DNA from: Chrysemys picta bellii
Taxonomy: Eukaryota
Assembly: GCF_011386835.1 (NCBI RefSeq)
Contig: NC_088792.1
Span: 289,540,001-289,604,000, forward strand
Reading direction: 5' to 3'
Length of the DNA stretch: 64,000 nt
This document shows positions 17,379 to 61,998 of the stretch, piece by piece. The first letter of the stretch is position 1. Each line of letters begins with the position of its first letter. Made by a program: the position numbers and the translations under genes. Below the pieces are notes generated by a model, which was not told the origin of the DNA, did no database searches, and worked only from the letters and a program-made list of their open reading frames with translations.

Positions 17379-17521
17379 CTAGTGTGGGCTCCATGAATCT
17401 TTTGCAGTGTGCGTGTTTCCATTGGTCTCCATTTTATCCCCATCAGAACTGTCGTCTTCCTGAGCATTTAGAGTTCGCCACTTTCCCCAAACACCCTCTT
17501 TGGCTCGGACATGAAGGGTAC
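17379..17521 (-). CDS. NUGGC-like: NUGGC-like exon 22 of window, probable last coding exon ((G)TLHVRAKEGVWGKW...DSWSPH*)
   Basis: Pyrimidine-rich acceptor tattttgttctcctcttgcatacaataaAG; phase 1 matches the preceding exon; ends in TAG. No homology support, so less certain. Confidence 0.6.
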
Positions 17522-19671
17522 CTTTATTGTATGCAAGAGGAGAACAAAATATTAGATTCAGAGGCATCAGTCCTGCTTTGACACCAGTGAATTTTGCAGC
17601 TCTTGTTTGGTGGTTCCCAACATTTTGCTGGAATCCCACTGGGGAAACACTAATGGCTGGGTGTGTTCCTCTGTTCTGGCCCCCTTGCAACACACTTTAA
17701 AACAACACTGTCTTTCCGCTCTGTCCATTCAATCTTTCATCTGGTCTTTGTCCATCCCCCCATCTCCTCCGTCTCTTTTGTCTTGCTTCTTCCTTTGTGT
17801 ACTTTTCTCTCTCTTTTTTTTTTTTTTTTAATTCTTATCTGGAAACAGTCTCTCCTCTCCCTAGTCCACAAAAAGGTGTCTGTACCTAAACCTCTGTAGA
17901 CATGAGCTGCTTCCAGCATTGGCTACAGCAGGGACCAGTGCATGAGCAGGAACAGAATGCAGTTAACTTTCTAGGGCCAAGCAACTTTCCCTGCCTCCAG
18001 TTATTTCTCTCTGCAGCCTGCCCCTCAACAAGTCTTAAGGTTCCCCAAAGGATCCCACGTCCCAGTACTCTAGTCATTTAACACTATCAATGCTACCTCT
18101 GAAACACATGCAGGAGCTACTGGTAGCTGAGGGGGAACAGGGTGTTAACACGGATATGGGGCTGCTGTAGAAAGCTCCTAGACTTGAACAATCCTCCTGA
18201 TAGCCATGTCATAATTAAGGCTGGCAATAGACTGCAAAGAGCCATACAAAACTCTTGCTTGCAGCTAGTAGAAGATTGACTTCCCCTCAAGGTAAGCATC
18301 CCGCTGTTTGAAGCCCTGCTTACAATGGCATACAGACCCTTAATGTAGGCACACCCTAGTCCTGTCATTACACGGGCATCTACTTAAAGTCCTCTTAACA
18401 ACGACCTGTTTAAAAAGAAAGATCACTTACCTCTACAATAACTGAAGTTCCTCGAGATGTATGGTCCTTATTTGTATTCTATTGTGGTGCACATGTGCTC
18501 CGTGCAACTGAGACTGGAAAATTCTTACTAGTAGCGTCCGCACCTGTGCCCTGTACCTCTTCATGCTCCAATCTAAAGGCATTAGGGGAGGTGTGGACTG
18601 AATGCTTCTCCAATACCTTTTGAGAGTGGTTTGTGGTAGAGAAAGGATCTGATGCAGGAGAGGAGCAGGGTGGGTAGTGGAATACACAGAGGAACCACAT
18701 CTCAAAGAACTCAGGTCATTTACCTTACTGTTCTTTCTTCAAGTGATGGTCCCTATGCGTATTCCACTGTGGGTGACTCCCAAGCAGTATTCACCAAGGA
18801 GGAGGGTGAGAGAACCTGTATTGCACCATTAACACTAGGACCACTGTACCGAAGAACGCATCTGCAGAAGAGGCTTGCTCCAGTGCATGTCTAGTAAAGG
18901 TCTGCACAGAGCCCAGTGTTGTCACTCTTCAGTTTTCCAGGAGGGAAAAACCCTGAAGAGATGGCCCTGAAGCAGTCTGGGCTCTGGTCAAGTGAGCCCT
19001 CACTCTGCTATGATCTTGCAGGGATGACGACTTGTCAAAGGCAAACAACCAGAAATCAATTTGAAAAGACTCAGAGAGGAGACCGCTTCTCCTTTCAGCT
19101 GCTCAGCAAAGGAAACAAAGAGTCTCAGAGATTTCTGGGAGGGTTCAGTCCTTTGTAGGTAGGAAGCTATGCCTTGAGGGACGTCCATAGAGTGGAACTT
19201 CCTGTCCTTCCTGATGGCGTGAGGTTTTGGGGAGAAGACCAAAAGGTGTATGACCTGGTTAATGTGGAATTCAGAGGGAACCTCTGGAATGAACTTGGGG
19301 TGTAACCTCCTTACTCTAGGGAGCACTGCATAAGGAGTCTGCCACAAGGGCCCTGAGCTCACCCACTCTTCTGGCAGAGGTGATTGCAGTCAGGAAGGCT
19401 ACCTTCATAGACAGGTGAAGAAGGGGGCAAGGGGCCAATGGTACAAACAGAGGATTCATGAGTGTTGACAAAGCCAAGCTGAGGTCCCAAGACGGTGCTG
19501 GTTTCAGTACTGGAGGAAAAGTTCTGGCAAGGCCTTTCAGTAATCTTAGTTATAGGTTGGGTGAAGACCGAGTAGCTGTCAATCAGGGACTGGAATGTGT
19601 TAATTGCTGCCAAATGCAGACACTGGGAACAGAGAGAGCCCCAGCTTCTTCAGGGAAAGAAGGTAGTCTAA

Positions 19672-19923
19672 GGCCTGGTCCACACTAACCCTCCATTTTG
19701 AACTAAGGTACGCAAATTCAGCTACGTTAATAACGTAGCTGAATTCCAAGTACCTTGGTTCGAACTTACCGCGGGTCCAGACGCGGCAGGCATGCTCCCC
19801 CATCGATGCCGCGTACTCCTCTCGCCAAGCTGGAGTACCGGCGTCGACGGCGAGCACTTCTGGGATTGATCCCAGAAGATCGATTGCTTACCGCCGGATC
19901 CAGAGGTAAGTGTAGACCTACCC
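19672..19923. mobile_element. PIF/Harbinger-type MITE
   Basis: TAA TSD on both sides; same core as 13158-13453. Confidence 0.88.
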
Positions 19924-20900
19924 TAAGAGAGTAGAGATGTCCAAATCCTCTGGGGTTATGTGACGAAGTTGGTACCAGACAGAAAATCTCTTCCATTTAG
20001 GCCCACAACACTGTCTCGTGGGGAGTTTTCTGCTATTATGGAGTACAGATTGTACTTCCTTGGAGCACAATTCCTCTAAGCTCATCATCCTTCCCAACAC
20101 CAGGCTGTTAAGACAGAAGAATGCTAGGTTGGGATAGTTGATTCTGCCTCTGTTCTGTGTTAGAAGGTTTGGAAACGGATGGATATGCATGCACGGGAAC
20201 ACTGACATCTGACGGACGCTGCTGAACCAGAACTGCCTCAGCCAGTAGGATGCCATGAGACTCCCCAACACGCTGTCCTTGATTTTCTTTAGGACTCAGG
20301 GCAAAACGGTGGCGGGGTAGGAAGGCATTCATCAGCGGCTCCAACCACTGAACCAGGAAAGAATCCTCTGGAATCGTGACCACAACCTGCTTGGGAACAC
20401 TAGGTCGGGCATTTCTTGTTGTCCTTGTACACGAAGAGATCCCACAGTGGGAACCCCCACTGGAAGATGTTTTGTACCACCAAGTTACGTAGTTCCCACT
20501 TGTGGTCCTGCAGAAGCTTGTGAGTGGAATCCTGGGCTTCCTCCAGAAGAATCTGAAGACACTCTGGAATTCACACCTTGAAATTGCTTGTAGTCGTTGG
20601 GTAGTGATGGTGCGGCTGGTATCACCACCTCATCAGGGGATGAGGAAGAGAGTGCTGCAGGGGGGTCGAACCGTTCTGTGTGCTTGGGTTGATCTTCCTC
20701 ACAGTACTCATGAGGGGGCTGAGGAGACGTACTCCCTTTGCAGTGATCCTTGTGTAGACACCTGCAGAGATCCCTTTAAGTCAGGCGGTCTGCAGTAGGG
20801 ATCCCAGGAACCCCAACGTCCAGGGGATGGGATCATAATGATAAGGAGGTGGTGACAAAGGGGAGGGTACCAGGAGAATCTGGAGCTCCTATCTTGGCAA

Positions 20901-21883
20901 ACTCCTGGGGGAATTCTGTGCCACTGCAGGGGTGCATAATTAATGAGCCACGCATATTTTAAATTTTTTTGCGCAGAAAAAAGCTTCTGCTTAAAAGTCA
21001 CTGCAGTTCCGTCTTTTGGCCACCAGAGGGTGCGGTGGCGACAGAACACAGCAGCAGCTCCCAGACAGGGGGAGGACAGACTGGGGCAGGGGCTGAATAG
21101 GAGTGGAGGCACAGGGCCCCATCATGATCGGGGAGGGGGTGCAGAGCTACATAGGGATAGGGAGGTGGCTGGGTGGGGGCACAGACTTACTGGGACAGGG
21201 GGAAGAGGTATAGAGCCATATAGGGACAGGGCGTGGCTGGGTGACGGCACAGAGACACATGGGGATGGGGGAGGGGGAAGAGTGGGTGTCTGAGTGGAGG
21301 TGGAGGGACACGTGGACAGGCAGTGCAAGGACACGTGGATGGGGGTGTGTGTGTCTGAGTGGGGGTGGAGGGACACATGTGCCTGACTGAATGGGAGAGG
21401 CTAGGGGTCAGCCAGGGTCTACATGGGGGAAAACTCTCTAGCAGTCCCTCCCCGTCCCCCCCAAAAAACCTGTTCCATACTTTTCCCACCCATACCCAAC
21501 AACCCTCCAAGTTCATACCCAGGCTTCTTCCCAACAAGTATTTCCCTTTCCCTCAGCTTCTCTATTACTCCTCACTGCCCCCAGACTTTGCACTGCTTCT
21601 GGGGGATGCAGGAAATATGGTTCTGTATTGTAATTTAAATGAATTATTACGCAGAGTTCTGTATTAATATGCATAGAAAGGAATCTATTTGTCAAAAAAC
21701 ATTTTCTGAATCTTTTTTTGTTGTCTGTATTGTTACAGACACACTTGTTGACAGGTATTTTGAAATAAATGACCAAAATAATTGAAACTGGTATGATTAT
21801 ATAGTGTTATTTTGACAAATAAAATATGCAGAATTTGAAAATATTGTGCGCAGAATTTTTAGGCACAGAATTCCCCCAGGAAT
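20901..21883. mobile_element. Non-autonomous DNA transposon
   Basis: TIRs cctgggggaattctgtgcc / ggcacagaattcccccagg; G-rich interior. Confidence 0.8.
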
Positions 21884-23472: not shown

Positions 23473-23521
23473 CTGCTGCACTTGGAATGGTAAACAGCTC
23501 TCTTTCATCCTTCACAGTTAC
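23473..23521 (-). CDS. NUGGC-like: NUGGC-like exon 21 (VTVKDERELFTIPSAA)
   Basis: ttaatttcctcAG acceptor, GTaagc donor; 49 nt, phase 0 to 1. Confidence 0.7.
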
Positions 23522-23975: not shown

Positions 23976-24129
23976 GTGAGAGCTGGGTGGTGCCTCAGAC
24001 ACAGATGTTCCTGGAACAGAGGTTGTATTCCAGTTGTAAAACGCAGGTGCACACTCTCTGCTTGTGTTCTGTGGGTGACTTGCCATGGACTTTCGGGCTG
24101 AGACCACCAGTCTGCCAGGAACGTGTTGG
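23976..24129 (-). CDS. NUGGC-like: NUGGC-like exon 20 (QHVPGRLVVSARKS...EAPPSSH)
   Basis: tttattttctcgaattcAG acceptor, GTaagc donor; 154 nt, phase 2 to 0, bridges exons 19 and 21. Confidence 0.72.
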
Positions 24130-26316: not shown

Positions 26317-26552
26317 CTCGGTAGATGGAACCCAGCAGGTTCCACTTCTGGGCTTTGTTCTATGGTTTTGCCTTTGTGCTTCTTCTCCAACTGTGACTGG
26401 ATCTCTCCTCCTCCTCTCTTTCTGCCATATGGATAACACTTCACGCCAGGGAGCAGGGGCTGCTGTGCGATGGTGAAGACGGTTGGTTGATCTGATGGCA
26501 AACTGGAAGGTGGGACCTCAAGAGTCTTTTCTTCGTCATCATATTTTAAGTC
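26317..26552 (-). CDS. NUGGC-like: NUGGC-like exon 19 (DLKYDDEEKTLEVPP...YGRKRGGGEIQSQLEKKHKGK...GFHLP)
   Basis: ttttttccctcttccctAG acceptor, GTaact donor; 236 nt, phase 0 to 2, open. Confidence 0.8.
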
Positions 26553-27683
26553 CTAGGGAAGAGGGAAAAAAATTAAATACCTGCTAAACTGAACATGCTA
26601 AAATGCAGCCTGCAGCAACCTTAACTTCTGCATTCTTAACCATGTATCTCAAATGCTTTCTTAACCCATTTTGTAGGGAATTTCCTTGGGTTCTTTCTTT
26701 GGTTTAAAAAAGAATATGGATTCCCCCTCCCCCCCCAGAATTCAGTGAAAACACAGCAAGAGTTCCAGGAGCACTGAACAAGATGAACAATAGCTGAGCC
26801 CGTAACAGCTTACAATTCAAAAGTATGCAGCTTATGCCACCTGCATACGCATGCGCAACACGGCCGCCTTTTGCCGTACACTTTATAAAAACCAATGAGA
26901 TGATGAATGCAGAAGTCTACTCAAAAACAGCACATATATTTCAAAGGCTCATAAGTCAGTTAAATTACAAAAGCTTTTGCTTAAAGACTCTCCAAAAATA
27001 ATTCACCTTCAGATAGAGATTAACAACCCTAGATAATTTCAGCTCAAGAGGTCAGAATTCCTGAAAGATGAGTGACTAAACACCATGAAATAATATTTTA
27101 TCTCCATCATCACAAGAGACAAATCAAATGAGAATTGCTGCAGGTGGGCTATCATCCAACATCTGGCAGGGGCAGAGATCCATGATCAAACCATGGATGT
27201 TAGAGTGGTTACATTCAAGAGTCTCCCAGAAGCGAAGCCTCGCAGCAGCACAGGGCAGAAAGCTTGTTGTGGTGACTTGCTAAACTAAAGGTACAAATAC
27301 AGTATGGGAGTTTGTAGTTAAGTCATGCGTGTCTGTCTGATTAGGAAGTAGGTCTGATAGATAAATACAAAAAACAACCACCCAAAAAAACAAAAATCAT
27401 TGCAAGACAGTGAGAATTCACTATGTCACTAGAACTAGATTCTACTTGAGGTTGAAGAATCTGTTCAAGAGCAGATGATCTATTAACATGTAGGGCAAGG
27501 CCCCAGTCTTTCAGGACAACTCTTCAGGACTGGCTGGCACTCATCTGTGGAGCTCAAGTATCTGATAATACCAGCTTTCCCAGCAAACAGCCTCCAATTC
27601 ATTCTCTCTTTGGAAACAAGCTTGTTTTCTGATAGTCACCCTGAAATTCCCACCTCTAGACTGCAGAACTCATGATGGCTCAC

Positions 27684-27853
27684 TTTGACAGTGTAATACA
27701 CCCCCAGCGATTCCAGTTTCTCTCTTCCCTGCTGCAGATTTAGTTCCCGGAACCAAGGTATGCCCCCATGTCTTGCCGAAATGAATTCTATCAAGCTATG
27801 GAAAGATGATGGGTCCTGGAGCTTGTCCAGGATAATGAGAGCCTCCTGGTTAC
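27684..27853 (-). CDS. NUGGC-like: NUGGC-like exon 18 (NQEALIILDKLQDPSSFHSLIEFISARHGGIPWFRELNLQQGREKLESLGVYYTVK)
   Basis: ctgtctttatacctAG acceptor, GTgagc donor; 170 nt, phase 1 to 0. Confidence 0.85.
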
Positions 27854-29535: not shown

Positions 29536-29676
29536 TTGGGTTGGATGCCTGGACTCCCAATCTGGAATAAATGTTCTTGGCAAACTCAGGAGAGAGATGA
29601 AGGATCAAATAATATAGGTGGAAGCAACATTCACAAAGATACACGCTGCTGAACGGAAGAGTCATGGTGGTATTAT
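29536..29676 (-). CDS. NUGGC-like: NUGGC-like exon 17 (NTTMTLPFSSVYLCECCFHLYYLILHLSPEFAKNIYSRLGVQASNP)
   Basis: catctttcttcctccaaAG acceptor, GTgagt donor; 141 nt, phase 1 to 1. Confidence 0.85.
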
Positions 29677-30515: not shown

Positions 30516-30549
30516 CTGTCATAGTGATGGTGACTTCTTGCACAGATAT
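30516..30549 (-). CDS. NUGGC-like: NUGGC-like exon 16, 34-nt micro-exon (ISVQEVTITMT)
   Basis: ctgtctcttgtatttttaAG acceptor, GTgagt donor; phase 0 to 1, required for frame continuity. Confidence 0.82.
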
Positions 30550-32747: not shown

Positions 32748-32977
32748 CTGAATGGGATTAATGTGAGAAAGTGACATGGTCCCAATGCGGATGATATTGC
32801 ACTTTCCCAAGAAGTTTGGGGGATCCAAGCCTTCCTGCAGCTCCCTCTTTAACGGCAGCTCCTTCCCAGGAGAAGCAGGTACAGAACAACTTTCTGTCTT
32901 GCTGAGGTTGGGAAGAACATAATCTATACGAGATATTTTACAAATCTTGCTGACTTTGGCACAGATGTTCACTAAAT
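32748..32977 (-). CDS. NUGGC-like: NUGGC-like exon 15 (LVNICAKVSKICKISRIDYVLP...GKCNIIRIGTMSLSHINPIQ)
   Basis: Acceptor ...tttaatgttttgtccAG, donor GTactg; 230 nt, phase 1 to 0. Confidence 0.87.
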
Positions 32978-33706: not shown

Positions 33707-33818
33707 CTGGAATAATTCCATCATTTTTCTGGACAGGCTTCAGCATTGGTTCAAACTGCAGAGTCAAGGCTTTAGTCAGCTCCTGAACCAAGCACTCAAA
33801 ACTACCACCGATGTAGAT
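33707..33818 (-). CDS. NUGGC-like: NUGGC-like exon 14 (IYIGGSFECLVQELTKALTLQFEPMLKPVQKNDGIIP)
   Basis: gtcttgttttAG acceptor, GTaaag donor; 112 nt, phase 0 to 1. Confidence 0.87.
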
Positions 33819-35807: not shown

Positions 35808-35941
35808 CTGGAGCAGGTCAAGCTGGTGCCATAACTTATCAGTGACACGGTTAAACATGGTCTCTTTCTGACTGTGGACGTGCCTCTGCATAAGATCTTT
35901 CATTCTCTGGAAACAGCCAGGACCATTCAGTTGGCTACAAA
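35808..35941 (-). CDS. NUGGC-like: NUGGC-like exon 13 (CSQLNGPGCFQRMKDLMQRHVHSQKETMFNRVTDKLWHQLDLLQ)
   Basis: catccctctcccgtAG acceptor, GTgaga donor; 134 nt, phase 1 to 0. The GxGxFxRMK motif corresponds to NUGGC GKKACERMK. Confidence 0.92.
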
Positions 35942-37310
35942 CTACGGGAGAGGGATGGTATTTAAATGTCAGCACATAATCTCACAAGTGTTGGTGCAGC
36001 CTTGTCCATGTGCTACTCAACCAATGGCCAGAATGGTAATCTGTCAGGAGGCCTGGTGCCACACAATGCCTACTAAAATGGAAACTGCAATCTAATAGAG
36101 GTGTGGCCTACAGAGACAGCAGGTCCCAACCAGAGACGACCCAGGCCTGTTGATAGTGGAGGGGGTCAGAATCCTGGAACAGCTCAAGTCATGTCCCCCA
36201 CCCCAGCAGTGCCTCCCTCCCAGGAAGCAGTGCCCCTCCCTGCAGATCCCAGCTGTTCCTCCTGCCTCTCCCTGCCTGCTCAGCTGTCCTGCAGGGAGAA
36301 GGCCCGACCATACCATGCGATCAAGCAATCTGGAGGGGGCACATGACCCTACATGTCCCCCCCCCCACACACGTATTGCCTCTGGTCCCAACATATGCTG
36401 CTTCATTTTGATCCAAGTGGCCATACTAAATTGCATGTTGGGATGGCACTGAAGGCACTAGACTGCCTTATTATTCATGAAGCCCCAAGCTGTCATGAGG
36501 AGAGAAGTTCTCCCTCTCGGGAACAAGGGAAGCAAAGCTTGCATGAGAAACAGGGCTGTACACTGAAGAGAAGGTGGGACTCAATCTTCATTGTAGAACT
36601 CGGATGTATTTAGCTTGTAGACCACACAGACTGAACTACACAGCCAGGGGGAGCTTTGTGGTCATGAGCCTGAGCACATCCCTAGTGCTTTTACAGCAAA
36701 CCATAGCTGCATGTATACAGACGACATAACTGTCACTGTGGATTAAACTCCACATGTTCAGCACCAAACATACAAACCTCTGCTACCTGCATTACTGACC
36801 CTCTTTAGCTGTGATGACGCAGCACATTGCATACTCTGCAGCGAGTCAGTAGGGGGAGTCATGAGCACAGAAAAAAAAGCCAGGGTTTTACATGTTGATC
36901 CCTCAAGTTCTTTTCACCAGGGAATGTGAGCAGCTCCAGACCTGACAGCAACATCAGCAGAATATGGTAGTGGAACGGTTGCTAGGCTGTCTGCTGGCAC
37001 CCGTAACACATTCCAAACCCCATACGGTCTCCACAATCCCTAGACTTCCAATTTCAAAACCGTGGGCATTTGACCTACCACTCTTCTGCCTTCATCATCA
37101 CATGCTTCCAATTTTAAATTAGCCCAGACCTATGCAATCATAAACACAACAGCAAAGTATTACTTCATTCATGCACCATAGGAAGGAATCACTGCAGAGT
37201 CTCTGAAGTCCCTTATAAAGTTCCCAGAGACTCATTTTGGTGTGGCCCCTAACATCCAGAGCATACAATTTGCTGCTTCATCACAGCTAAAGAGGGTTAG
37301 TAATGCAGGT

Positions 37311-38352: not shown

Positions 38353-38461
38353 CTGCATATATTGGTTTCATGCTAGCCTGTATTTCTGGTGTCAGGACAC
38401 GGGATATACCACGCTGCCTTTTATTGATGTACTCGGTCTGATCCAGGAGAAAGTTACACAA
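38353..38461 (-). CDS. NUGGC-like: NUGGC-like exon 12 (LCNFLLDQTEYINKRQRGISRVLTPEIQASMKPIYA)
   Basis: cctccacttcccAG acceptor, GTagga donor; 109 nt, phase 0 to 1. Confidence 0.92.
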
Positions 38462-38702: not shown

Positions 38703-38862
38703 CAAAGCCTGGACAGCTTCCATTTGATGCCTCTGAATGACGTTTACTGGCTCTGTGTTTCTGCCTTTTTCCTGGAGCTTGTTCTTGAGATCTCTGAAGA
38801 AGTACTTCAATTTATCTAAGATGGCTTTGCTGAACTGTTCGATGGACTCGCCCAATCTACAA
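38703..38862 (-). CDS. NUGGC-like: NUGGC-like exon 11 (CRLGESIEQFSKAILDKLKYFF...QMEAVQAL)
   Basis: catttctccccttccAG acceptor, GTaaga donor; 160 nt, phase 2 to 0. Confidence 0.92.
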
Positions 38863-40028: not shown

Positions 40029-40177
40029 CTGAAGACTTCATTCCAGGTCACGGAGACTGCACTGGATATTGGCTCTGTGAGTTGCTCATTGAAATCAACA
40101 AACCCACATGCTACCGAGCTGTAGACACCTTGACGAGCACACAGAGCTCGGTACGTAGCATAGGGGTATCCAATAAC
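40029..40177 (-). CDS. NUGGC-like: NUGGC-like exon 10 (VIGYPYATYRALCARQGVYSSVACGFVDFNEQLTEPISSAVSVTWNEVF)
   Basis: tccttgctttccacttcacAG acceptor, GTaccc donor; 149 nt, phase 0 to 2. Family motif T(Y/L)(K/R)AxCx(R/K)xG(V/I)(Y/F)...D(F/L)NExL. Confidence 0.95.
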
Positions 40178-41410: not shown

Positions 41411-41685
41411 TTAAACTACCACCACCAACACCCCACCCCAGTTACATAGCATTTTTAGAGTGATGCCAAAAAACACTAGATAGTCCTCATCACAGCCCTC
41501 CAACATAGATCCACATTAGCGTAATTTTATATGCGGCTTTGTACAGAACACAGTACATGGAGAGCACAGGGGTACTATAATGTAAGTGCAGTGAAAGGCA
41601 GCACCACGCTTGGCAGGCAGGTTGGCAAGGGGGTTGGCAGTGACAGCATAGGAGAGGGTTTGGCAAACAGAACCACGTATCTTAC

Positions 41686-41886
41686 AGGTAAACCCCAACT
41701 TCTGACTTTGTCTTCGCACAGCTCCTCTGCCCTTCTGGCTCCTTTCTTTAGATTGGCGAGAATGAGGACAGAAAAATAGTACTGGATATCATGGAGGCTG
41801 TCTTCCACTGCCTCCTGAAGGAGCATGGGTAGTCTCGACAGGCACTCCTGCACGATTTCTTGGACCTGGGCCCAGTGAGAATTGTC
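41686..41886 (-). CDS. NUGGC-like: NUGGC-like exon 9 (DNSHWAQVQEIVQECLSRLP...EDKVRSWGLP)
   Basis: cttctctgtttgcctttcAG acceptor, GTaaga donor; 201 nt, phase 0/0. Confidence 0.92.
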
Positions 41887-42177
41887 CTGAAAGGCAAACA
41901 GAGAAGATCCTAACAGGGCAACGTAAAAAGCTCTCAGTGCAGCAGGTACATGAGGCCATCTACATCCCTGCTGAACTCTGCCAGGTGCTTCAAAAGCATC
42001 CAGAGACCTGCACACAATGCAAGCAATCAACGTGGGCCTCCTGCTACATTGCTTCAGGTCACTGGATGTTGGCTAAGTCGCACCTAGAAGAATTAAAGAA
42101 CATGACTTAGAGCTAACTTTGTACAGAACCCACAGCTCTGCTGGCCTACTAGATCTACATCCAGAGACACAAGTTGG

Positions 42178-42375
42178 ATGCAGTAAACTCTTTCACTGGA
42201 CCAACTTTTGTTGGTGAGCAAGACAAACTTCTTAACTACACAGAGCTCTTCTTCAGGTATCCATGTAAGCTCAAAACCTTGTCTCTCTCACTAACAGAAG
42301 CTGGTCCAATAAAAGATATTACCGCGCCCACCTTGTCTCTAATATCCTGGGACCGACGCAGCTAAAACACTGCAT
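42178..42375. mobile_element. Short interspersed repeat, Penelope-end-like
   Basis: ggaccaacttttgttggtgag...gctggtccaataaaagatattacc...cctgggaccgac recognised as a recurring reptile repeat. Confidence 0.55.
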
Positions 42376-42875
42376 ACAAACCTACATCCAGTAAGTCTCC
42401 ACATCTCTCCAGTGGAAGATCCAGGGACCATAAAAACATGCACACATCAGATATGTGGGCACCCTGCATTACATTCAAAGGCAGCACAACACAGGGCAGC
42501 AGCAGCAAGATGCCATAAGCCAAAGAGGTACAGCTACTTAGCCACCCACATCTTAACAAAGAGGTGCAGCCTACAGAAACCATAGGTCTCAGCCAGAAGT
42601 GATTCATACTGAGCCAAGCATTCAGGCCACACCTCATATGCTAGGACCTGCAGTCTTCTGGCCATAACTCCATAGTAAGAACAATAAAGTGGCCACAGGC
42701 TGCACTTGAGAATTTTTGGAGCTGGATATGGCTCAGAGAATGCACTCTGGCATCCCCTGGTTTAGTGACACGATTAAATACCTTTGCTTTCTTCACACGG
42801 CTACAAAGTGGCCCTATGGGACCCATCTAACAAGTACGCTTCACAGGCCAGTACTGGACCGAGAACAATGGCGTA

Positions 42876-43170
42876 CAGCAGTACCTCAGAGTTACCAAGT
42901 GACCAGTCAACACCTCATTCGGAATCGGAAGTACACAACCGGGCAACAGCAGAGGACCCCCCACCCTCCCTCCAAAAAAACAAGTACAGTACTGTGTTAA
43001 ATTACTAAAAAAAAATAAAGGGAAAGCAGCATTTTTCTTCTGCATGGTAAAGTTTCGAAGCGGTATTAAGTCAATGTTCGGTTGTATACTGTTTTGTTCA
43101 GAGTTACCAACATTTCAGCGTTACAAACAACCTCAATTCCCAAGGTGTTCATAATTCTGAGGTTCTACTG
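42876..43170. mobile_element. Tigger-like MITE
   Basis: cagcagtacctcagagtta / taattctgaggttctactg termini; TA TSD. Confidence 0.85.
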
Positions 43171-43583
43171 TAGTTACAATTTTTTCCTCACGTATGAGTT
43201 TGTCTTTGGTTCAAACTAATGACTGCCCATTGTCTGCCATCATTGTTGTCACAGAGGAGTTCCATTCGGATTAGGTACTAGAAGTCAGTCAACGTGAAAT
43301 GCATTAAACAAGTTAAAATTAATCTTTGTATTTTAAAGAGAGAAACCCAGGACTTGTGCTGCAAAGAGAGAGAAGTAGAAGTAAGAAGACAGTCTCTTCG
43401 GTTCCCTAAATATGTATATTATTAAGCAGGAGTCTAGTAGGCCATACTGTTCATTTTGCTGGCTGCCGTTCCAGCATTTCTTCTCCATCTTGAGTAGGAC
43501 ACAGGACAATAGCACTAACAGCCAGCAACGTGTATCATGCAATAAACCTAGAGTCCATACAAGTCACTGCAATAGGTCTATTC

Positions 43584-44046
43584 CAGCCGTTCTCAAACTG
43601 TGGGTTGGGACGCCAAACTGGGTCGCGACCCCATTTTAATGAAGTCACCAGGGATGGCGTTAGACTTCTTGGGCCCAGAGCTGAAGCTGGAGCCCCAGGG
43701 CTTCAGCCCTGGTTGGCAAGGCTCAGGTAACGCCCCCCCCCCGCCTGGGGCTGAAGCCCTTAGGTTTCGGCTTTGGTCCCCCGGCCCAGGGTGATGGGGC
43801 TCAGGCTTTGGTTTTGGCCCCAGGCAGTGAGGCTCAGGCTCCAGCTAGTCTAACGCCATCCCTGGTGACTCCATTAAAACGGGGTCCCGACCCAGTTTGG
43901 GGTCCCGACCCACAGTTTGAGAACCGCTGGAATAGACATATTGCCTGGGATTGTGGGGCTCAGGCTTCGGTGCCCCCTCCTGGGGTTGTGTAGTAATTTT
44001 TGTTGTCAGAAGGGGGTCACGGTGTACTGAAGTTTGAGAACCCCTG
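43584..44046. mobile_element. Composite hAT-type MITE insertion
   Basis: Complete element 43584-43929 plus a partial second element 43938-44046; the whole is flanked by direct GTCTATTC. Confidence 0.82.
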
Positions 44047-44152
44047 GTCTATTCCATATTATGCATTTGCAAATATCTATCAGTTTTGAGGGAACTTTTA
44101 ATAGTTGCTCAACCTAAATAAAAGTAAGTTAAAAATGTTAGTGTATGCTTAC

Positions 44153-44286
44153 CTCTGCTCTCTGATTGGTCAGATAATTGACCACTTGACTTATGACACG
44201 AGCCACATTTCTGATCACCTTCTCTGTTGCCACTATGCTATGCTGCAAGGCAGTGTGAATGGCAAACTTCTTCAGAGCTGGTATTT
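44153..44286 (-). CDS. NUGGC-like: NUGGC-like exon 8 ((E)IPALKKFAIHTALQHSIVATEKVIRNVARVISQVVNYLTNQRAE)
   Basis: cttgtctctttgtccAG acceptor, GTaagc donor; 134 nt, phase 1 to 0. Completes the family TEIPxL motif. Confidence 0.94.
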
Positions 44287-44714
44287 CTGGACAAAGAGAC
44301 AAGAGAACATGACCATTCCCCTGCATGGACCCTCTTCCTCAGAAATTATTTATGTTACATTAGCACTCAGAGGCCTCAATCATAATCAGGACCCCACTGT
44401 GCCAGGCTCTGTACAAACACCTAGTTATCAGACAAAATATGAAAAGGAAGACTTGGGGAAGAGGACTAGGAAAACAGTGATGGGAAACATTTTGTTGCAA
44501 AAACTATCATAACTGGATGTAGAGATATTTTTAAAGAAGAAGATATAAAACAAAAGCGATAGCTGCAATGTCTATTGGCCATGTACCAGGGAGAACAAAC
44601 TGAACCTGACCTCAAAGTTACAGGGGGCGGATCATTGTATTAGTGAGCAATCAAGACAACAGACCACTAACTCAGCAGCATGATACTTGAGCTCAAGTTA
44701 GCAGGTGTTAATAC

Positions 44715-44937
44715 CTGTATCCTCCTCATTGTGGAAGACTTGTGGCTGCCCATCTCGGAGCAGTTTTCCATGCAATTTTAGATATTCTGTAGAGCTGACT
44801 GTGAAAACCTGAAGTTTCCCATGCTGGGATTCAACTTCACCAGGGTCACTTGTGTCTGAAGTAGTTAACTCTTCATCCTCAGTCTCCTCTTCTTCCTCAT
44901 CTTCATCTTCAGCAAATGCTGCTTTCCTTCTCATTTC
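44715..44937 (-). CDS. NUGGC-like: NUGGC-like exon 7 (EMRRKAAFAEDEDEEEEE...LQVFTVSSTEYLKL...EEDT)
   Basis: ttctttgttgcAG acceptor, GTatta donor; 223 nt, phase 0 to 1. VFTVSSxEY corresponds to NUGGC VYTVSAQEY (G5 region). Confidence 0.95.
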
Positions 44938-45464
44938 CTGCAACAAAGAACAGCCTCCATTGCACCCCTACTCAAAGTAGACCGGTTGATCAGCTGCAGA
45001 GGCTTTAGCTAACATCTAGTTTAGACACTAGAATGAGCATTTCTTGTCTGTCTAAGAGATATGTGCTAGTTCAACCACAAGCTGCATTTGGTGCCGTTCT
45101 CTGGCCTGTGTTATTCATAAAGTCATAATGGCAATTTATGGATGAACGTACGACTCGTCTCCTGAAATTAGCCAAACAAAAACACCGAGTTGCCCTCTAC
45201 TAGATAATGTGCTTCTCATTAAAAAGGTGCCTTAACCATTCATTAGTAGTACATATAGAAACATCAGCAATTCAGATTAAAGGAGTGGTAGCACCAAAAA
45301 CGTATGGATTCCCTTTAACTTTTCTGTGAAGGTTGACATTTCAGATTTCAGTTCTGGTTCACTGCATCCACTCACAACCTAATAGCAGTGAAATCCAGAT
45401 GGTGGCTCGGAAGTGCTGTCCCTCCTTCTGCAGAGACAGAGGTGGTGTTCCCAAGGATTCCTAC

Positions 45465-45584
45465 CTGAAGGCCGTTGTTGAAATCCACCCAAATCCGCTG
45501 TTTGGAAAACCTATTTCGGGACTGAACGCAGATCAGACTAATATCACGAAGCTTCATATCTTTCTCTCTTTGCAAATTACTCAT
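45465..45584 (-). CDS. NUGGC-like: NUGGC-like exon 6 (MSNLQREKDMKLRDISLICVQSRNRFSKQRIWVDFNNGLQ)
   Basis: ctAG acceptor, GTagga donor; 120 nt, phase 0/0. Confidence 0.92.
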
Positions 45585-46744
45585 CTAGGTAAAGGAGAAA
45601 GGGGAGAAATGAGATTATACCCAGAACAGGCGATATCATTTAAAAAAAACCAAAGTTCCAACTGCACCCAAAAGCTGACGCTGCATGTGACCTTCACATT
45701 GTTGTTTTAGTGGAATGTCAATGCTGTTCGGGGTCAGGAATGACAAGGTTGCCAAAGGAAGTAACTTAAAGGAATAGGAGGTTACTTACTGATAACTGAA
45801 GGTTCTTCAAGATGTGTGGTCCCTATCTATATTCTACTGTGGGTTACACATGTGCACTATGTGCCTGGAACTGGAGAATTTGAAAGTAGCGTCCACTGGT
45901 CCATGCATGCCCCCTGGATCACCTTGTCTCTCCACTCAAGAGGATAAAGGACAATGTGGCCCGCCTGCCTCTCCAGTTCCTTCTCCACCGTGAATCGGAG
46001 GAGATCCAAAGCAGAGAGGAAGGTGAGCAGATAGTTGAATAGGGACTACACATCTCAAAGAACCTCTAGTTACAGGTAAGTAACCTCCTCTTAGCGTGAT
46101 GGTCCCTATTGTATTCCACTGTGAGTAATTAACAAGCAGTACTTAAGTAGGAGGAGGGTGCGAAGATGTTGATGATAGGGCTGAGCAAAGGACTGCTGTT
46201 CCAAAGGAGTCCTGGACTAGGGCAGTGTGTCTCGTAAAAGTGTGAACAGAGTCCCACGTGGCTGGATTATAGAGACCAAGGAGGATTACATCCTAAAGAG
46301 ATGCCATAGTTGCGGCTTGTGCTCTCGTGGAATGAGCTCTTCCCCCATGTGGGAGAGAGGCTCAATATTTGGTAACAGTAGAACGCAGCCCGAGATCGAT
46401 TTGGAGATCCTGTGAGTTGAGATCACTTGTCCACTGAGTCTTTCTGTTATAGCGACAAATAGTCTTGGGGACTTCCTGATTGGTCTTGTTCTGTGTAGGT
46501 AAAAGGCTAAGGCCTGCCAGACACTGAAGGTGTGGAGTTTCTGTCCCTCTGAGGAAGTCTGCTGTTAGGGAAGAGCACAGGTAAGTGGATTGAATGGTCC
46601 AAGTGAAATTCCAAGACAACCTTGGGAGTGAATTTGGGGTGTAAACATAACACCTTATCTTTATGGAATGCAGTGTAAGGAGGATCCGCCATCATCACTC
46701 CAAAATTCGCCAACCCTTCTGGCTGAGGTGACAATGGTCTCACG

Positions 46745-47636: not shown

Positions 47637-48778
47637 AAGAATCATTGAATCACAGGACGGGAAGGGACCTCGAGAGGTTGTCTAGTCCAGTCCCCTGCAC
47701 TCATGACAGGGGTTTGTCCAACCTGCTCTTAAACATCTCCAAGGATGGAGATTCGACAACCTCCCTAGGCAATTTATTCCAGTGCTTCACCACCCTGACA
47801 GTTAGGAATTTTTTCCTAACGTTCAACCTAAACCTCCTTTGCTTCAATTTAAGCCCATTGCTTCTTGTCCTAACCTCAGAAGTTAACAAGAACAATTTGT
47901 CCCCTCTAAGTCTTCTCTTTTCCAGCCTAAACGAACCCAATTTTTTCAATCTTTCCTCATAGGTCATGTCTTCTAGACCTTTAATCATTTTTGTTGCTCT
48001 TCTCTGGACTCTCTCCAATTTGTCCACATCTTTCCTGAGATGTGGCACCCAGAACTGGACACAATACTCTAGTTGAGGCCTAATCAGCACAGAGTAGAGG
48101 GGAATGGAAGAATTACTTCTCGTGTCTTGCTTACAACACTCCTGCTGATACATCCCAGGATGATGATTGCTTTTTTCGCTACAGTGTTACACTGTTGACT
48201 CATATTTAGCTTGTGATTCACTGTGACCCCCCAGATCACTTTCTTCAGTACTCCTTCCTAGGCAGTCATTTCCCATTTTGTATGCATGCTACTGATTGTT
48301 CCTTCCTAAGTGGAGTACTTTGCATTTGTCCTTATTGAATTTCATCCTATTTACTTCAGACCATTTCTCCAGTTTGTCCAGATCATTTTGAATGTTAATC
48401 CTACCCTCGAAAGCACTTGCAACACTTCCCAGCTTGGTATCGTCCGCAAACTTTATAAGTGTACTCTCTGTGCCATTAGCTAAATCATCAAGGAACATTT
48501 TTTAACAGAACTGGACCCAGAACTCATCCTTATGGGACCCTACCTGATATGCCCTTCCAGCTTGATTGTGAACCACTGATAACTACTCTCTGGGAACAGT
48601 TTTCCAACCAGTTATGCACTCATCTTATAGTAGCTCCATCTAGATTGTATTTCCCTAGTTTGTTTATGAGAAGGTCGTACAAGACAGTATCAAAAGCCTC
48701 ACTAAAGTCAAGATACACCACATCTACCGCTTTCCTCCATCCACAAGGCTTGTTACCCTGTCAAAGAAAGCTATTAGT
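47637..48778 (-). mobile_element. CR1 LINE 3' fragment (second subfamily)
   Basis: [10 protein letters not shown] (48289-48498) and [30 protein letters not shown] (47701-48153). Confidence 0.92.
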
Positions 48779-50877
48779 TGAAGAGGAAGTGTAGCATCAT
48801 TAGAGTTGATGCATTTTAAAGAATCCTTATTGAGGTTGCAGGAACAAACCATCCCGATGTGTAGAAAGAATAGTAAATATGGCAGGCGACCAGCTTGGCT
48901 AAACAGTGAAATCCTTGCTGATCTTAAACGCAAAAAAGAAGCTTACAAGAAATGGAAGATTGGACAAATGACCAGGGAGGAGTATAAAAATATTGCTCAG
49001 GCGTGCAGGAGTGAAATCAGGAAGGCCAAATCACACTTGGAGTTGCAGTTAGCAAGAGATGTTAAGAGTAACAAGAAGGGTTTCTTCAGGTATGTTAGCA
49101 ACAAGAAGAAAATCAAGGAAAGTGTGGGCCCCTTACTGAATGAGGGAGGCAACCTAGTGACTGAGGATGTGGAAAAAGCTAATGTACTCAATGATTTTTT
49201 TGCCTCTGTCTTCACGAACAAGGTCAGCTCCCAGACTGCTGCACTGGGCAGTACAGCATGGGGAGAAGGTGACCAACGCCTCTGTGGAGAAAGAAGTGGT
49301 TCGGGACTATTTAGAAAAACTGGACGTGCACAAGTCCATGGGGCCGGATGCGCTGCATCCGAGGGTGCTAAAGGAGTTGGCGGGTGAGATTGCAGAGCCA
49401 TTAGCCATTATTTTTGAAAACTCATGGCGATCGGGGGAGGTCCCAGATGACTGGAAAAAGGCTAATGTAGTGCCCATCTTTAAAAAAGGGAAGAAGGAGG
49501 ATCCGGGGAACTACAGGCCAGTCAGCCTCACCTCAGTCCCTGGAAAAATCATGGAGCAGGTCCTCAAGGAATCAATTATGAAACATTTAGAGGAGAGGAA
49601 AGTGATCAGGAACAGTCAGCATAGATTCACGAAGGGGAAGTCGTGCCTGACTAACCTAATTGCCTTCTATGATGAGATAACTGGCTCTGTGGATGAGGGG
49701 AAAGCAGTGGATGTGTTATTCCTTGACTTTAGCAAAGCTTTTGATACGGTCTCCCACAGTATTCTTGCTGCCAAGTTAAAGAAGTATGGGCTGGATGAAT
49801 GGACTGTAAGGTGGATAGAAAGCTGGCTAGATCGTCGGGCTCAACGGGTAGTGATCAATGGCTCCATGTCTAGTTGGCAGCCGGTTTCAAGCGGAGTGCC
49901 CCAAGGGTCGGTCCTGGGGCCGGTTTTGTTTAATATCTTTATTAATGATCTGGAGGATGGTGTGGACTGCACTCTCAGCAAGTTTGCAGATGACACTAAA
50001 CTAGGAGGCGTGGTAGATACACTAGAGGGTAGGGATCGGATACAGAGGGACCTAGACAAATTAGAAGATTGGGACGAAAAAAACCTGATGAGGTTCAACA
50101 AGGACAAGTGCAGAGTCCTGCACTTAGGACGGAAGAATCCCATGCACTGCTACAGACTAGGGACCGAATGGCTAGGTAGCAGTTCTGCAGAAAAGGACCT
50201 AGGGGTCACAGTGGACGAGAAGCTGGATATGAGTCAACAGTGTGCTCTTGTTGCCAAGAAGGCTAACGGCATTTTGGGCTGTATCAGTAGGGGCATTGCC
50301 AGCAGATCGAGGGACGTGATCGTTCCCCTTTATTCGACATTGGTGAGGCCTCATCTGGAATACTGTGTCCAGTTTTGGGCCCCACACTACAAGAAGGATG
50401 TGGAAAAATTGGAAAGAGTCCAGCGGAGGGCAACAAAAATGATTAGGGGTCTGGAGCACATGACTTATGAGGAGAGGCTGAGGGAACTGGGATTGTTTAG
50501 TCTCCAGAAGAGAAGAATGAGGGGGGGATTTGATAGCAGCCTTCAACTACCTGAAGGGGGGTTCCAAAGAGGATGGAGTTCGGCTGTTCTCAGTGGTGGC
50601 AGACGACAGAACAAGGAGCAATGGTCTCAAGTTGCAGTGGGGGAGGTCCAGGTTGGATATCAGGAAAAACTATTTCACTAGGAGGGTGGTGAAACACTGG
50701 AATGCGTTACCTAGGGAGGTGGTGGAGTCTCCTTCCTTGGAGGTTTTTAAGGCCCGGCTTGACAAAGCCCTGGCTGGGATGATTTAGCTGGGAATTGGTC
50801 CTGCTTTGAGCAGGGGGTTGGACTAGATGACCTCTTGAGGTCCCTTCCAACTCTGATATTCTATGATTCTATGATTC
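48779..50877 (+). mobile_element. Young 5'-truncated CR1 LINE, RT largely intact
   Basis: ORFs 48806-49387 and 49167-50681 ([41 protein letters not shown]) with two frameshifts; (ATTCTATG)n 3' tail. Confidence 0.96.
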
Positions 50878-54325: not shown

Positions 54326-54412
54326 TCTGAATTCCTTCTCTAGGATTTTCTTCCTAAGGTCATTTTCTTTCTGGAATGAAGCTGGATTTTCTGCACCAGG
54401 TCCTTGCCGTTG
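54326..54412 (-). CDS. NUGGC-like: NUGGC-like exon 5 (QRQGPGAENPASFQKENDLRKKILEKEFR)
   Basis: ctgttctctcatAG acceptor, GTgagt donor; 87 nt, phase 0/0. Confidence 0.82.
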
Positions 54413-55757: not shown

Positions 55758-55875
55758 CTCTTGTTGGAGTTGAGCATAAAGTGTGTCCTTCTCCATCTCC
55801 ATTTGCACCCGCTGATTTTCCAGTTCTTCCAGTGATTTTTCTATGGGCTGGATTTCATCTCTTAAATCCAGGTCA
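55758..55875 (-). CDS. NUGGC-like: NUGGC-like exon 4 (DLDLRDEIQPIEKSLEELENQRVQMEMEKDTLYAQLQQE)
   Basis: cttgcAG acceptor; the donor GAG|GTtggt gives the phase 0 needed for exon 5 (alternative donor 4 nt downstream); 118 nt. Confidence 0.87.
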
Positions 55876-59503: not shown

Positions 59504-59685
59504 CTCATTATTTCTGTAACTTTGAAGCTGTCAGTCTTAGTACAAACAAATGCTAAACTCCCATATTGGCCATCCATGAGCAGCTGCCTCCGCAGGTTTG
59601 CACTCAGCATCTCTTTGGCAGTCTTGTCATCCACTGCTCTGGTGATGTTGGCTACTACCCATACTGCATTGCAGTTCTTTAAATA
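59504..59685 (-). CDS. NUGGC-like: NUGGC-like exon 3 (YLKNCNAVWVVANITRAVDDKTAK...LAFVCTKTDSFKVTEIM), contains G4 TKxD
   Basis: ctttccatcttttAG acceptor, GTaact donor; 182 nt, phase 0 to 2. Confidence 0.96.
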
Positions 59686-60983: not shown

Positions 60984-61437
60984 CGTGCTACAGTGTGCAA
61001 TATGATAACATCTATGGTGATTATTTACAGACCTCAAATAACAATCAGTATATGCCCTGAAGCACAAAGATGGATAGCACTTGTAATTTTATCCTAATTA
61101 GTGCAGCTGTGGATGCCACTTATCCATAGAAGCTACTAATCCTAGAGTTTTAGTAATCAGCTTGTCACTATGGCATCATGCAGCAGCAAGTGCCACACAT
61201 TAATTACATGGTGTTGCAAATAGTTATGTTTGAAAACCAGGGGAAAAGGGAAGAGGTTGCTCATGCTCTCCGTGCATATCGAATGACATGTGTGCAAGAG
61301 CATTATACAGCAGTTAAGGAGGAAGATGCTGTTTCCATTGCAGATCAGGGTCTGAGAGCCAGAAGGGACACAAGGGTTTAAAAAACAAAACAAACCACAG
61401 CCTTAAAAGGGCTGCAATTTCAGAGATGCCATTTTAC

Positions 61438-61644
61438 CTCTTTGGCAGCATTATCCCTGGCAGCATTGGAATCTCGAATTCCAGGCAAATCCACCAGCAC
61501 TGCCCCAGTCTTCAAGACATCAGCACCGGGAACACGGATTTTGACACATTTAACAATGGGCCAAAATTCTCCACCTTTCATGTCGCGTAAGTTATCAGTC
61601 CGAGAGTCAATGAATTTCTCTATTTTGGTGCGGAAATCTGCTGC
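61438..61644 (-). CDS. NUGGC-like: NUGGC-like exon 2 (AADFRTKIEKFIDS...FWPIVKCVKI...VLVDLPGIRDSNAARDNAAKE), contains G3 DxPG
   Basis: ccctccgttgcttAG acceptor, GTaaaa donor; 207 nt, phase 0/0. Dynamin-family DLPG and family WPxxK motifs. Confidence 0.96.
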
Positions 61645-61785
61645 CTAAGCAACGGAGGGAAAAGAAGACTAAGGTTCACTACAGGCAATAGGCTGAGCTA
61701 CTCTATTTATCATCTCGATCCGTGTGAACTAGCCTGAACGGGTGAAGATGCAGGAAGGTCACACGTCAAATCATGCTGTGTTTAC

Positions 61786-61998
61786 CTTCTCTGCAGAGAT
61801 GTGCTTTACTGTCCCAAGATGCTGAGTCACCTCCTTCATCTCCATTAGCTTTGGAAGTTCTGCTATCGTCCCATATACAGCTTTCACACAACTATAGGCA
61901 GCGCCAGCTTCAGTCTTGCGATCTGGGCATCGTTTCTTTAAGTTACCAGATTTGTCTTTCATATCTTCTAGGAGAGCTTTCAGCTCATTATCCCACTC
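61786..61998 (-). CDS. NUGGC-like: NUGGC-like exon 1 of window (EWDNELKALLEDMKDK...KHISAEK)
   Basis: ctgtatttcccacttcAG acceptor, GTaaac donor; 213 nt, phase 0/0. EWxxEL corresponds to NUGGC EWREEL. G1/G2 exons are not in the window. Confidence 0.93.

Follow-up and report, generated by a model that had tools for sequence, protein, structure and literature searches.

What protein is encoded by the long run of exons on the minus strand of a 64,000-nucleotide (nt) stretch of the painted turtle genome (Chrysemys picta bellii, NC_088792.1, positions 289,540,001 to 289,604,000; hereafter the window)? A sequence-only reading took it for a complete NUGGC/SLIP-GC-like GTPase of ~1,100 amino acids (aa), from an old lineage distinct from mammalian NUGGC and specially kept in reptiles. 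Mammalian NUGGC/SLIP-GC is a germinal-centre-associated nuclear GTPase of ~800 aa, reported to work in the nucleus; to our knowledge, it is among the least understood members of the dynamin superfamily, is known only from mouse and human B-cell work, and belongs to a family with no known mechanism. The window contains the last 22 coding exons of the annotated gene LOC101942721, ~27% of its coding sequence (CDS), through the stop codon. The best explanation, in which we have considerable confidence, is that they form the end of a ~4,130-aa FHA-linker-dynamin-like GTPase with a PH-like domain and a tail that carries a motif resembling a nuclear localisation signal (NLS), acting by the mechanism proposed below.

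Identity and architecture of the full-length protein

The translated gene model corresponds to residues 3025-4129 of isoform X2 of RefSeq Chrysemys picta bellii LOC101942721 (P0401, 4,129 aa), with 0 mismatches and a single 6-aa gap at the exon 19/20 junction, an identity that excludes chance. The supposed complete protein of ~1,100 aa is thus the C-terminal 27% of an FHA protein of ~4,130 aa that runs off the window edge. When 1.8 billion representative proteins were searched by phmmer with a single exon (61423-61644, minus strand, 74 aa), the best matches were proteins of 2,700-5,400 aa, in which the query exon lies 900-1,100 residues before the C-terminus. More than 50 vertebrate models in this length range carry the GTPase module at their C-terminal end. 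These giants reach 3,786 aa in Pelodiscus (LOC102447370), 4,010 aa in ostrich, 3,564 aa in Rhineura (‘nuclear GTPase SLIP-GC’), 3,367-3,680 aa in Xenopus laevis (‘nuggc.L’) and 4,600-5,400 aa in sharks and rays.

From N- to C-terminus, the protein comprises an FHA domain, a Ser/Glu-rich acidic linker of ~2,800 aa, a Dynamin_N G domain, a helical hairpin and DUF7605 bundle, a PH-like domain and a tail with the NLS-like motif. The FHA domain (~aa 40-110, in turtle orthologues 41-110; beyond the window) scores above the Pfam threshold in Pelodiscus (P0152; PF00498, E 7e-11, 42.8 bits against a cut-off of 20.7) and likewise in Xenopus, shark, amphioxus, a bivalve and Capitella. Pfam places FHA, Dynamin_N and DUF7605 together in full-length isoforms of turtle, Xenopus, amphioxus and a bivalve, and the annelid Capitella has all three within a compact 1,443 aa; for the horn shark protein Pfam gives FHA and Dynamin_N only. 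Across the giants, FHA, linker and Dynamin_N, mostly with DUF7605, recur in turtles, palaeognath birds, alligator, squamates, amphibians, sharks, amphioxus and molluscs. In P0401, Dynamin_N spans aa 2966-3191 (E 8e-18) and DUF7605 aa 3509-3683, equivalent to model aa 485-659, which bears out the assignment to a NUGGC/SLIP-GC-like GTPase made from the sequence alone.

The linker of ~2,800 aa between FHA and G domain has no Pfam match and a composition typical of disorder (60-69% polar, Ser 12-18%, Glu 8-14%). Ostrich has an alignable linker (37% identity) and Rhineura part of one (26%), but none could be aligned in the frog, shark or invertebrate proteins; outside the amniotes, similarity in this part of the chain is limited to the FHA region (45-57%) and a single short stretch in coelacanth. 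All that is described here of the 5′ three-quarters of the gene comes from database orthologues. In Emydura macquarii (L006 12724-19728), residues 154-2488, nearly the whole linker, lie in one 7-kb exon; the next exon, of 1.4 kb, codes residues 2486-2963, and the P-loop exon then lies ~7 kb upstream of the exon-1 equivalent. By analogy, the painted-turtle counterparts of these upstream exons must sit just beyond the right edge of the window.

Gene model

Orthologues retrieved by phmmer were placed on the window by tblastn, and junctions were fixed by a splice-site search scored against those orthologues; the 34-nt and 49-nt exons came to light solely through the Carettochelys (P0171) and alligator sequences. 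The resulting model has 22 exons on the minus strand, from 61998 to 17379, and all introns are GT..AG. Its CDS of 3,336 nt (1,111 codons and a stop) contains no internal stop. The exon count and open frame reproduce those first noted, and the 3,306 nt given then is explained by exon 18, whose two in-frame donors, 27684 (GTGAGC) and 27654 (GTGGGA), lie 30 nt apart. Choice of 27684 drops 10 codons, so both counts are plausible isoforms; both forms occur across species (alignment A2). The exon 19/20 junction (26317/24129) has an 18-nt alternative, and RefSeq isoform X2 lacks 6 aa that are present in the model. Five of the six motifs quoted in the sequence-only reading occur exactly on the minus strand; the sixth, in exon 10, has 9 rather than 5 residues between GV and DFN.

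The coding exons are as follows.

Exon 1, 61786..61998, minus strand: model aa 1-71, equal to P0401 aa 3025-3095; G-domain insert between switch I and G3; acceptor cag before GAGTGG, exon end AAG before donor gtaaac; tblastn matches from P0152, P0165 and P0005.
Exon 2, 61438..61644, minus strand: aa 72-140; G3 motif DLPG; DLPGIRDSNAAR at 61456-61491.
Exon 3, 59504..59685, minus strand: aa 141-201; WVVANITRAVDDKTAK at 59614-59661; RQLLMDGQYGSLAFVCTKTD at 59530-59589; G4 motif TKTD.
Exon 4, 55758..55875, minus strand: the long helical hairpin that follows the G domain begins here (helices 293-404 of the fold model).
Exon 5, 54326..54412, minus strand: placed by tblastn and splice-site model.
Exon 6, 45465..45584, minus strand: CVQSRNRFSKQRIWVDFNNG at 45471-45530; junction to exon 7 in contigs of four runs.
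Exon 7, 44715..44937, minus strand: acidic, poorly modelled (likely flexible) loop and VFTVSSTEYLKLHGKLLRD at 44752-44808; junctions in contigs.
Exon 8, 44153..44286, minus strand: both flanking junctions seen in contigs.
Exon 9, 41686..41886, minus strand: splice-site model and contigs.
Exon 10, 40029..40177, minus strand: start of DUF7605; TYRALCARQGVYSSVACGFVDFNEQLTEPI; Pfam DUF7605 on this exon alone at E 8.6e-5; junction in contigs.
Exon 11, 38703..38862, minus strand: DUF7605.
Exon 12, 38353..38461, minus strand: DUF7605.
Exon 13, 35808..35941, minus strand: end of DUF7605, helical bundle.
Exon 14, 33707..33818, minus strand: last helices of the bundle.
Exon 15, 32748..32977, minus strand: linker and first strands of the vertebrate-only PH-like domain.
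Exon 16, 30516..30549, minus strand: 34-nt micro-exon, ISVQEVTITMT, one PH-like strand; preceded by ttttaag and followed by GTGAGT.
Exon 17, 29536..29676, minus strand: PH-like domain.
Exon 18, 27654..27853, minus strand: end of the PH-like domain; alternative donor 27684.
Exon 19, 26317..26552, minus strand: low-complexity tail; bipartite NLS-like motif RKRGGGEIQSQLEKKHK.
Exon 20, 23976..24129, minus strand: tail.
Exon 21, 23473..23521, minus strand: 49 nt; VTVKDERELFTIPSAAG.
Exon 22, coding part, 17379..17521, minus strand: stop codon at 17379-17381; nearest AATAAA at 16806.

The P-loop (G1) exon is absent from 62000-64000: by tblastn, orthologue residues upstream of the exon-1 equivalent align nowhere in the window. 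In P0401 the P-loop, GNTGAGKS, lies only ~60 codons upstream of the part encoded here, in keeping with the earlier expectation of a P-loop exon beyond base 64000. An Rfam scan of the window gave no match, and NCBIfam gave nothing relevant on six exon-bearing reading frames. Exon 2 alone has a weak Pfam Dynamin_N score, and its phmmer search retrieved the giant orthologues.

Transcription and selective constraint

Public sequencing runs covering 38300-45600 fell into two groups, one with ~90% of sampled words present (genomic DNA) and the other with 12-16%, close to the exonic share of 15%. Between 40000 and 45600, contigs of four runs (X1, X5, X6 and X9; three studies, two organism codes) skip introns 6-9 exactly at the model junctions, which answers, for these introns, the check on splice junctions proposed with the sequence-only reading. 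The skipped stretches (45464-44936, 44715-44286, 44152-41885 and 41684-40175) have CT..AC ends, equivalent to GT..AG on the minus strand. The contigs reach 5.3 kb, and exon 6 sits 3.1-3.3 kb from their 5′ end; the model has 807 nt before exon 6, so the transcripts extend at least 2.3-2.5 kb upstream of exon 1. In X9 (organism B), the contigs carry a 3-nt insertion (TCC, plus strand) at 44902, within the Glu/Asp-rich loop of exon 7; the length of this acidic loop therefore differs by one codon between close relatives.

The ratio of nonsynonymous to synonymous substitution rates (dN/dS, Nei-Gojobori, ~1,000 codons) comes to 0.27 in the comparison with Pelodiscus, and to 0.25 and 0.24 in those with ostrich and Rhineura, respectively. 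The gene is intact, expressed and under purifying selection: the open frame, spliced contigs and dN/dS of ~0.25 agree with the earlier view that it is live.

GTPase module and predicted fold

The window encodes the G3 (DLPG, exon 2) and G4 (TKTD, exon 3) motifs, while G1 and the threonine of LPTS lie upstream in P0401. Alignment A1 comprises 41 C-terminal modules, with turtle, fungi and a diatom among their sources. It shows little or no variation in G1 (GxxGxGKS), the switch-I LPT threonine, DxPG and the Asp of TKTD, and the RAxDD residues of exon 3 are nearly invariant. G1, the switch-I Thr, G3, G4, a helical stalk or neck-trunk bundle and overall fold similarity all place the protein in the dynamin superfamily, and the pairing of Dynamin_N followed by DUF7605 in one chain is that of the NUGGC/SLIP-GC family. 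The protein is thus predicted, from its sequence, to be a dynamin-type GTPase of this family, with hydrolysis and dimerisation as its probable activities.

AlphaFold2 modelling of P0401:2938-3856 with the 41-module alignment gave a predicted local distance difference test (pLDDT) score of 81.8 and a predicted template modelling (pTM) score of 0.75. The model comprises a G domain (residues 1-290), a helical hairpin (293-404), a DUF7605-containing bundle of long helices (472-818) and the start of a beta-rich domain; an acidic loop (406-435) has pLDDT below 50 and is likely flexible. A search of the PDB by sequence detected no relative, nor any match to the FHA region. With Foldseek, the top PDB matches to the model were SynDLP, Nostoc BDLP, Campylobacter DLP1/2 and IniA (E 5e-12 to 1e-8, 820-920 columns), with a template modelling (TM) score of 0.53 for Nostoc BDLP normalised to the target and a probability of 1.0 for all of these as well as for Mx, Drp1, OPA1 and mitofusin; MxB, Drp1, OPA1, Mgm1, dynamin and mitofusins followed. 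The predicted fold is closest to bacterial dynamin-like proteins (DLPs).

The beta-rich domain (P0401:3770-3960; exons 15-18, 32977-27654) is detectable by BLAST only in vertebrates. Folded alone, its core has pLDDT 75-95, and it gave weak PH-like matches (E ~1e-3) to FACT SPT16/SSRP1/Pob3, CARMIL, Vps36 GLUE and kindlin; no SENP6/7 match appeared among its structural matches. In the tail, RKRGGGEIQSQLEKKHK fits the bipartite NLS pattern. Turtles, ostrich, alligator, squamates and a salamander share this motif, whereas the tails of the Xenopus laevis, lungfish, coelacanth, shark and invertebrate proteins lack it.

Distribution and phylogeny

A search at giant length returned 85 homologues. Giants occur in turtles (at least 14 species), emu, ostrich, alligator, many squamates, Xenopus, salamanders and coelacanth, as well as in many sharks and rays, amphioxus, hemichordates and many molluscs. 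In lungfish the copies fall below this length and include one duplicate; the Rhea, kiwi and tinamou entries are partial models, and those of coelacanth and hemichordates cover the GTPase module only. Neither the 85 giant-length homologues nor the close matches listed include a mammal, a neognath bird or a ray-finned fish. The suggestion that the lineage is probably absent from mammals is consistent with this survey; the notion of a lineage specially kept by reptiles gives way, with members in amphibians, lobe-finned fishes, sharks, palaeognath birds, amphioxus, hemichordates, molluscs and an annelid.

Queried with the C-terminal module, the database returned vertebrates first, then Capitella and bivalves (400-530 bits; several paralogues in bivalves) and then ascomycetes (370-405 bits), most of which share 42-46% identity over the G domain among the matches listed. 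Fungal and invertebrate members together score 370-500 bits and no mammalian protein is among the matches listed, which agrees with the earlier impression of greater closeness to these members than to mammalian NUGGC; the module is likewise nearer to them than to the NUGGC type. In a maximum-likelihood tree of 52 modules (‘quick’ search, long branches), the window sequence falls on the Chrysemys tip, and the vertebrate order follows the species tree: chondrichthyans, lobe-finned fishes, amphibians, squamates, then archosaurs and turtles. These comparisons indicate that the GTPase module is conserved from molluscs to reptiles.

Relation to mammalian NUGGC

Whether the giant is a paralogue of NUGGC or NUGGC itself in an ancestral form bears on how the family arose. 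On balance we incline slightly towards a paralogue. The competing reading, in which the giant is the ancestral-form orthologue and the mammalian and teleost NUGGC types are truncated, fast-evolving and relocated descendants, seems plausible without being the one we would choose. Mammalian NUGGC itself is absent from the best 150 phmmer matches, from the best 120 of two word searches of different length ranges, and from the 27 named clusters; it fell outside the best 120 because fungal proteins filled the list. The only NUGGC-type sequence in the tree, serving as a proxy for NUGGC, is a teleost tandem protein from Scortum (P0036). Its motifs, DLPGNGDYNKSRD and WIVTEINRA, resemble those given for human NUGGC in the sequence-only reading.

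In the free tree, this teleost protein is sister to all gnathostome giants (Shimodaira-Hasegawa-like approximate likelihood ratio test, SH-aLRT, 87) on a very long branch of 4.2. It has no DUF7605 match at E ≤ 0.001 and no helical hairpin. Each of these features speaks against orthology, yet forcing the protein into the position of the ray-finned-fish orthologue lowers the log-likelihood by only 0.37 (approximately unbiased, AU, test, p 0.49). The phylogeny therefore fits both an old paralogue and a degenerate orthologue, and does not sustain the claim of a separate lineage distinct from NUGGC.

Gene order points the other way from names. Mammalian NUGGC is part of a SCARA3-to-NUGGC block near GULO/CLU (PMC11169010). 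In ostrich and X. laevis, the next gene follows ~5.6 kb downstream in the same orientation and codes for a DUF383/DUF384 (HGH1-family) protein. Rhineura has a 1,701-aa WD40 gene on the upstream side and a convergent ZNFX1-like gene on the downstream side; the latter is the orthologue of a ZNFX1-like gene in the window (tblastx, 60-73% identity). The SCARA5/ELP3 synteny named at the outset as the sign of a canonical NUGGC was not seen: across turtle (downstream side), Rhineura (both sides), ostrich and X. laevis (downstream side), the neighbours are HGH1-like, ZNFX1-like or WD40 genes rather than those of the SCARA3/SCARA5-NUGGC-ELP3 block. Gene neighbours in Pelodiscus, Emydura and the teleost were uninformative. 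Synteny argues against simple orthology with the mammalian NUGGC locus.

NCBI or Xenbase nevertheless name the giants ‘nuclear GTPase SLIP-GC’ or nuggc in Xenopus, salamanders, many squamates, some turtles and amphioxus, which counts towards the ancestral-form orthologue. Given the differing synteny, these names appear to be based on similarity; they may also hint that frogs, squamates and some turtles have no better NUGGC candidate. Among the matches listed, giants and NUGGC-type genes never occur in the same species, a weak point because canonical NUGGC in turtles and frogs was not searched by name. The lack of giants from mammals, neognaths and ray-finned fishes among the 85 homologues also counts towards this reading. 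None of seven papers in which NUGGC and chicken both appear is a study of a chicken gene, a weak hint that birds lack the canonical gene. A duck paper that mentions Nuggc uses mouse-style symbols (e.g. Gm37915), which we read as mapped from mouse; it is silent on any avian gene.

Comparison with known systems

By database naming, mammalian NUGGC has the same Dynamin_N/DUF7605 pairing as the giant. The giant, in contrast, is ~5 times longer, with an FHA domain, an acidic linker of ~2,800 aa and a PH-like domain, and at 4,129 aa falls well outside the ~800-aa, FHA-less form of NUGGC proper. It also sits at another locus, and the relatives listed include fungal rather than mammalian proteins. Fungal and choanoflagellate proteins, annotated ‘nuclear GTPase SLIP-GC’ or ‘tat pathway signal sequence’, combine Dynamin_N and DUF7605 in ~1,000-1,400 aa. 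They share 42-46% G-domain identity and the invariant motifs with the giant and are collinear with it through DUF7605. However, two that were checked, one from each group, have no Pfam FHA match, BLAST detects no PH-like domain in them, and their length leaves no room for the giant linker. We know of none that has been characterised.

The best structural matches to the GTPase module are bacterial DLPs (SynDLP 7zw6, Nostoc BDLP 2j69, Campylobacter DLP1/2 5oxf and IniA 6j73) and mitofusins. The likeness lies in the G domain and the helical neck and trunk bundles of the predicted model, at a sequence identity of only 10-15%. Bacterial dynamin-like proteins and mitofusins bind or remodel membranes through a paddle or transmembrane tip, whereas the corresponding tip of the giant is an acidic, poorly modelled loop and the chain has an additional FHA domain, NLS-like motif and PH-like domain. 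Ki-67 and MDC1 begin with an FHA domain followed by thousands of Ser/Thr/acidic low-complexity residues, largely in one giant exon. The giant resembles them in its FHA head and long low-complexity stretch, although these scaffolds are not known to end in a GTPase and no sequence similarity was detected, the FHA region having no sequence match in the PDB.

Proposed mechanism and alternative explanations

We propose that GTP binding would drive dimerisation of the G domains, as in solved dynamin-like proteins, and that hydrolysis would by the same analogy alter the shape of the helical bundle. Since FHA domains recognise phosphothreonine peptides, the FHA head, placed at the far end of the long linker, would recruit the motor to a phosphorylated partner and tether it there. 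Heavy phosphorylation of the Ser/Glu-rich linker itself is conceivable. The NLS-like motif, the FACT-like PH fold and the behaviour reported for mammalian SLIP-GC suggest a nuclear or chromatin setting, and the giant is probably the slowly evolving NUGGC/SLIP-GC member that keeps the ancestral architecture. A broader version of this proposal, which we consider rather unlikely in its entirety, sees the giant as the ancestral bilaterian form of NUGGC, a nuclear, phosphorylation-targeted mechanochemical GTPase that was lost in mammals, neognaths and ray-finned fishes, which would retain no more than a truncated, fast-evolving NUGGC; its role would be in genome maintenance or nucleic-acid-sensing defence, possibly coupled to the ZNFX1-like helicase/E3.

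Several points weigh against our preferred explanation. The mechanism is a prediction throughout, from nuclear localisation and FHA ligand binding to GTPase activity and oligomerisation, and the PH-like assignment is weak (E ~1e-3). The nearest structural relatives remodel membranes, and a membrane-binding paddle is neither seen nor excluded in the predicted model. The joining of FHA and GTPase on one mRNA is predicted from RefSeq/Gnomon models in many species and from RNA contigs that reach only ~2.5 kb upstream, rather than read from a full-length transcript. Finally, two annotated models, Rhea isoform X2 (P0173, 1,121 aa) and Carettochelys (P0171, 1,088 aa), start at or inside the exon-1 equivalent, without P-loop and switch I. 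Either these annotations are truncated or they hint at an internal promoter whose product could not bind GTP, so short P-loop-less products may exist.

An alternative view of function assigns the giant mainly to innate antiviral defence, together with the convergent ZNFX1-like helicase/E3, rather than to genome maintenance. That gene is represented at 2340-5792 (plus strand) by one long open exon encoding a ZNFX1-like C-terminal part (AAA_12, E 1e-33; RZ-type zinc finger, E 3e-24). This gene and the GTPase gene converge, their stop codons 11.8 kb apart, and the pairing is repeated in Rhineura. Mx proteins among the structural matches and the multiple bivalve paralogues also lend some weight to a defence role, as does a study that counts a teleost ‘nuclear GTPase SLIP-GC’ among the immune-related genes acquired by horizontal transfer (PMC12107551). 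That study bases the immune label on the B-cell role of NUGGC in mice and humans and notes that functional evidence in fishes is lacking (PMC12107551). The giants, however, behave as an orthologue group, single-copy in nearly every species sampled, that tracks the species tree (bar the lungfish duplicate) at a dN/dS of ~0.25. This is not the pattern of an arms race and fits an antiviral role poorly; in ostrich and Xenopus, moreover, the adjoining gene is HGH1-like, not ZNFX1-like. We therefore judge a mainly antiviral role unlikely.

The short models raise the further question of whether the exons belong to a stand-alone NUGGC-like GTPase of ~1,100 aa, with its own promoter and with a P-loop exon a short way beyond the window edge. 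The Rhea and Carettochelys models are of this length, and so, at ~1,000-1,100 aa and without FHA, are the fungal and some of the mollusc homologues. Yet neither of those two models reaches upstream of the exon-1 equivalent (Carettochelys starts at an internal Met) and, without G1 and switch I, both look truncated. The match to aa 3025-4129 of a 4,129-aa RefSeq protein, the >50 vertebrate models that end in the GTPase module, and RNA contigs that run at least 2.3 kb past exon 1, with the P-loop only ~60 codons upstream, make a stand-alone protein very improbable. A decaying or non-functional copy, which the long repeat-filled introns and the loss of the gene in several vertebrate lineages might bring to mind, is refuted almost beyond doubt: the frame stays open across all 22 exons, the splice sites are canonical, spliced transcripts come from two organism codes, dN/dS is ~0.25 and the catalytic motifs are invariant.

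Implications

For the FHA-linked GTPase that we favour, the gene model and its Pfam domains are already public, while the architecture is undescribed in the literature searched and the pattern of losses is striking. Our searches found no paper on FHA-containing giants, DUF7605 or ‘SLIP-GC-like’ proteins beyond gene lists. The description of the protein as uncharacterised accordingly holds for its architecture and falls short in that the gene is annotated as RefSeq LOC101942721.

The distribution suggests that most animal lineages carry a much larger relative of NUGGC, with a far better conserved GTPase module. Its predicted architecture would couple a phosphopeptide reader (FHA) to a motor resembling bacterial DLPs through a linker of thousands of residues. 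If correct, this would provide a testable hypothesis for the ancestry of NUGGC, point to Xenopus, amphioxus and oyster as model organisms with the full protein, and document a clear, repeated loss of the giant gene in mammals, neognath birds and ray-finned fishes. Should the ancestral-form reading be true, Xenopus nuggc could serve as a tractable model for the original function of the family.

Repeats in the introns

The remark that the introns are filled with transposable elements is borne out by an element within intron 5, a long interspersed nuclear element (LINE) with an open reading frame (ORF) that lies outside the gene product.

LINE reverse-transcriptase ORF, 49167..50681, plus strand: inside intron 5; intact-looking, 504 aa; RVT_1, E 3.4e-35.

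Related fragments of the reverse-transcriptase tail lie on the minus strand at 47701-48153 and 37297-37944. Over the repeats at 40935-41310, 42244-42430 and 42992-43178, the depth of the RNA-type runs reaches tens of thousands.

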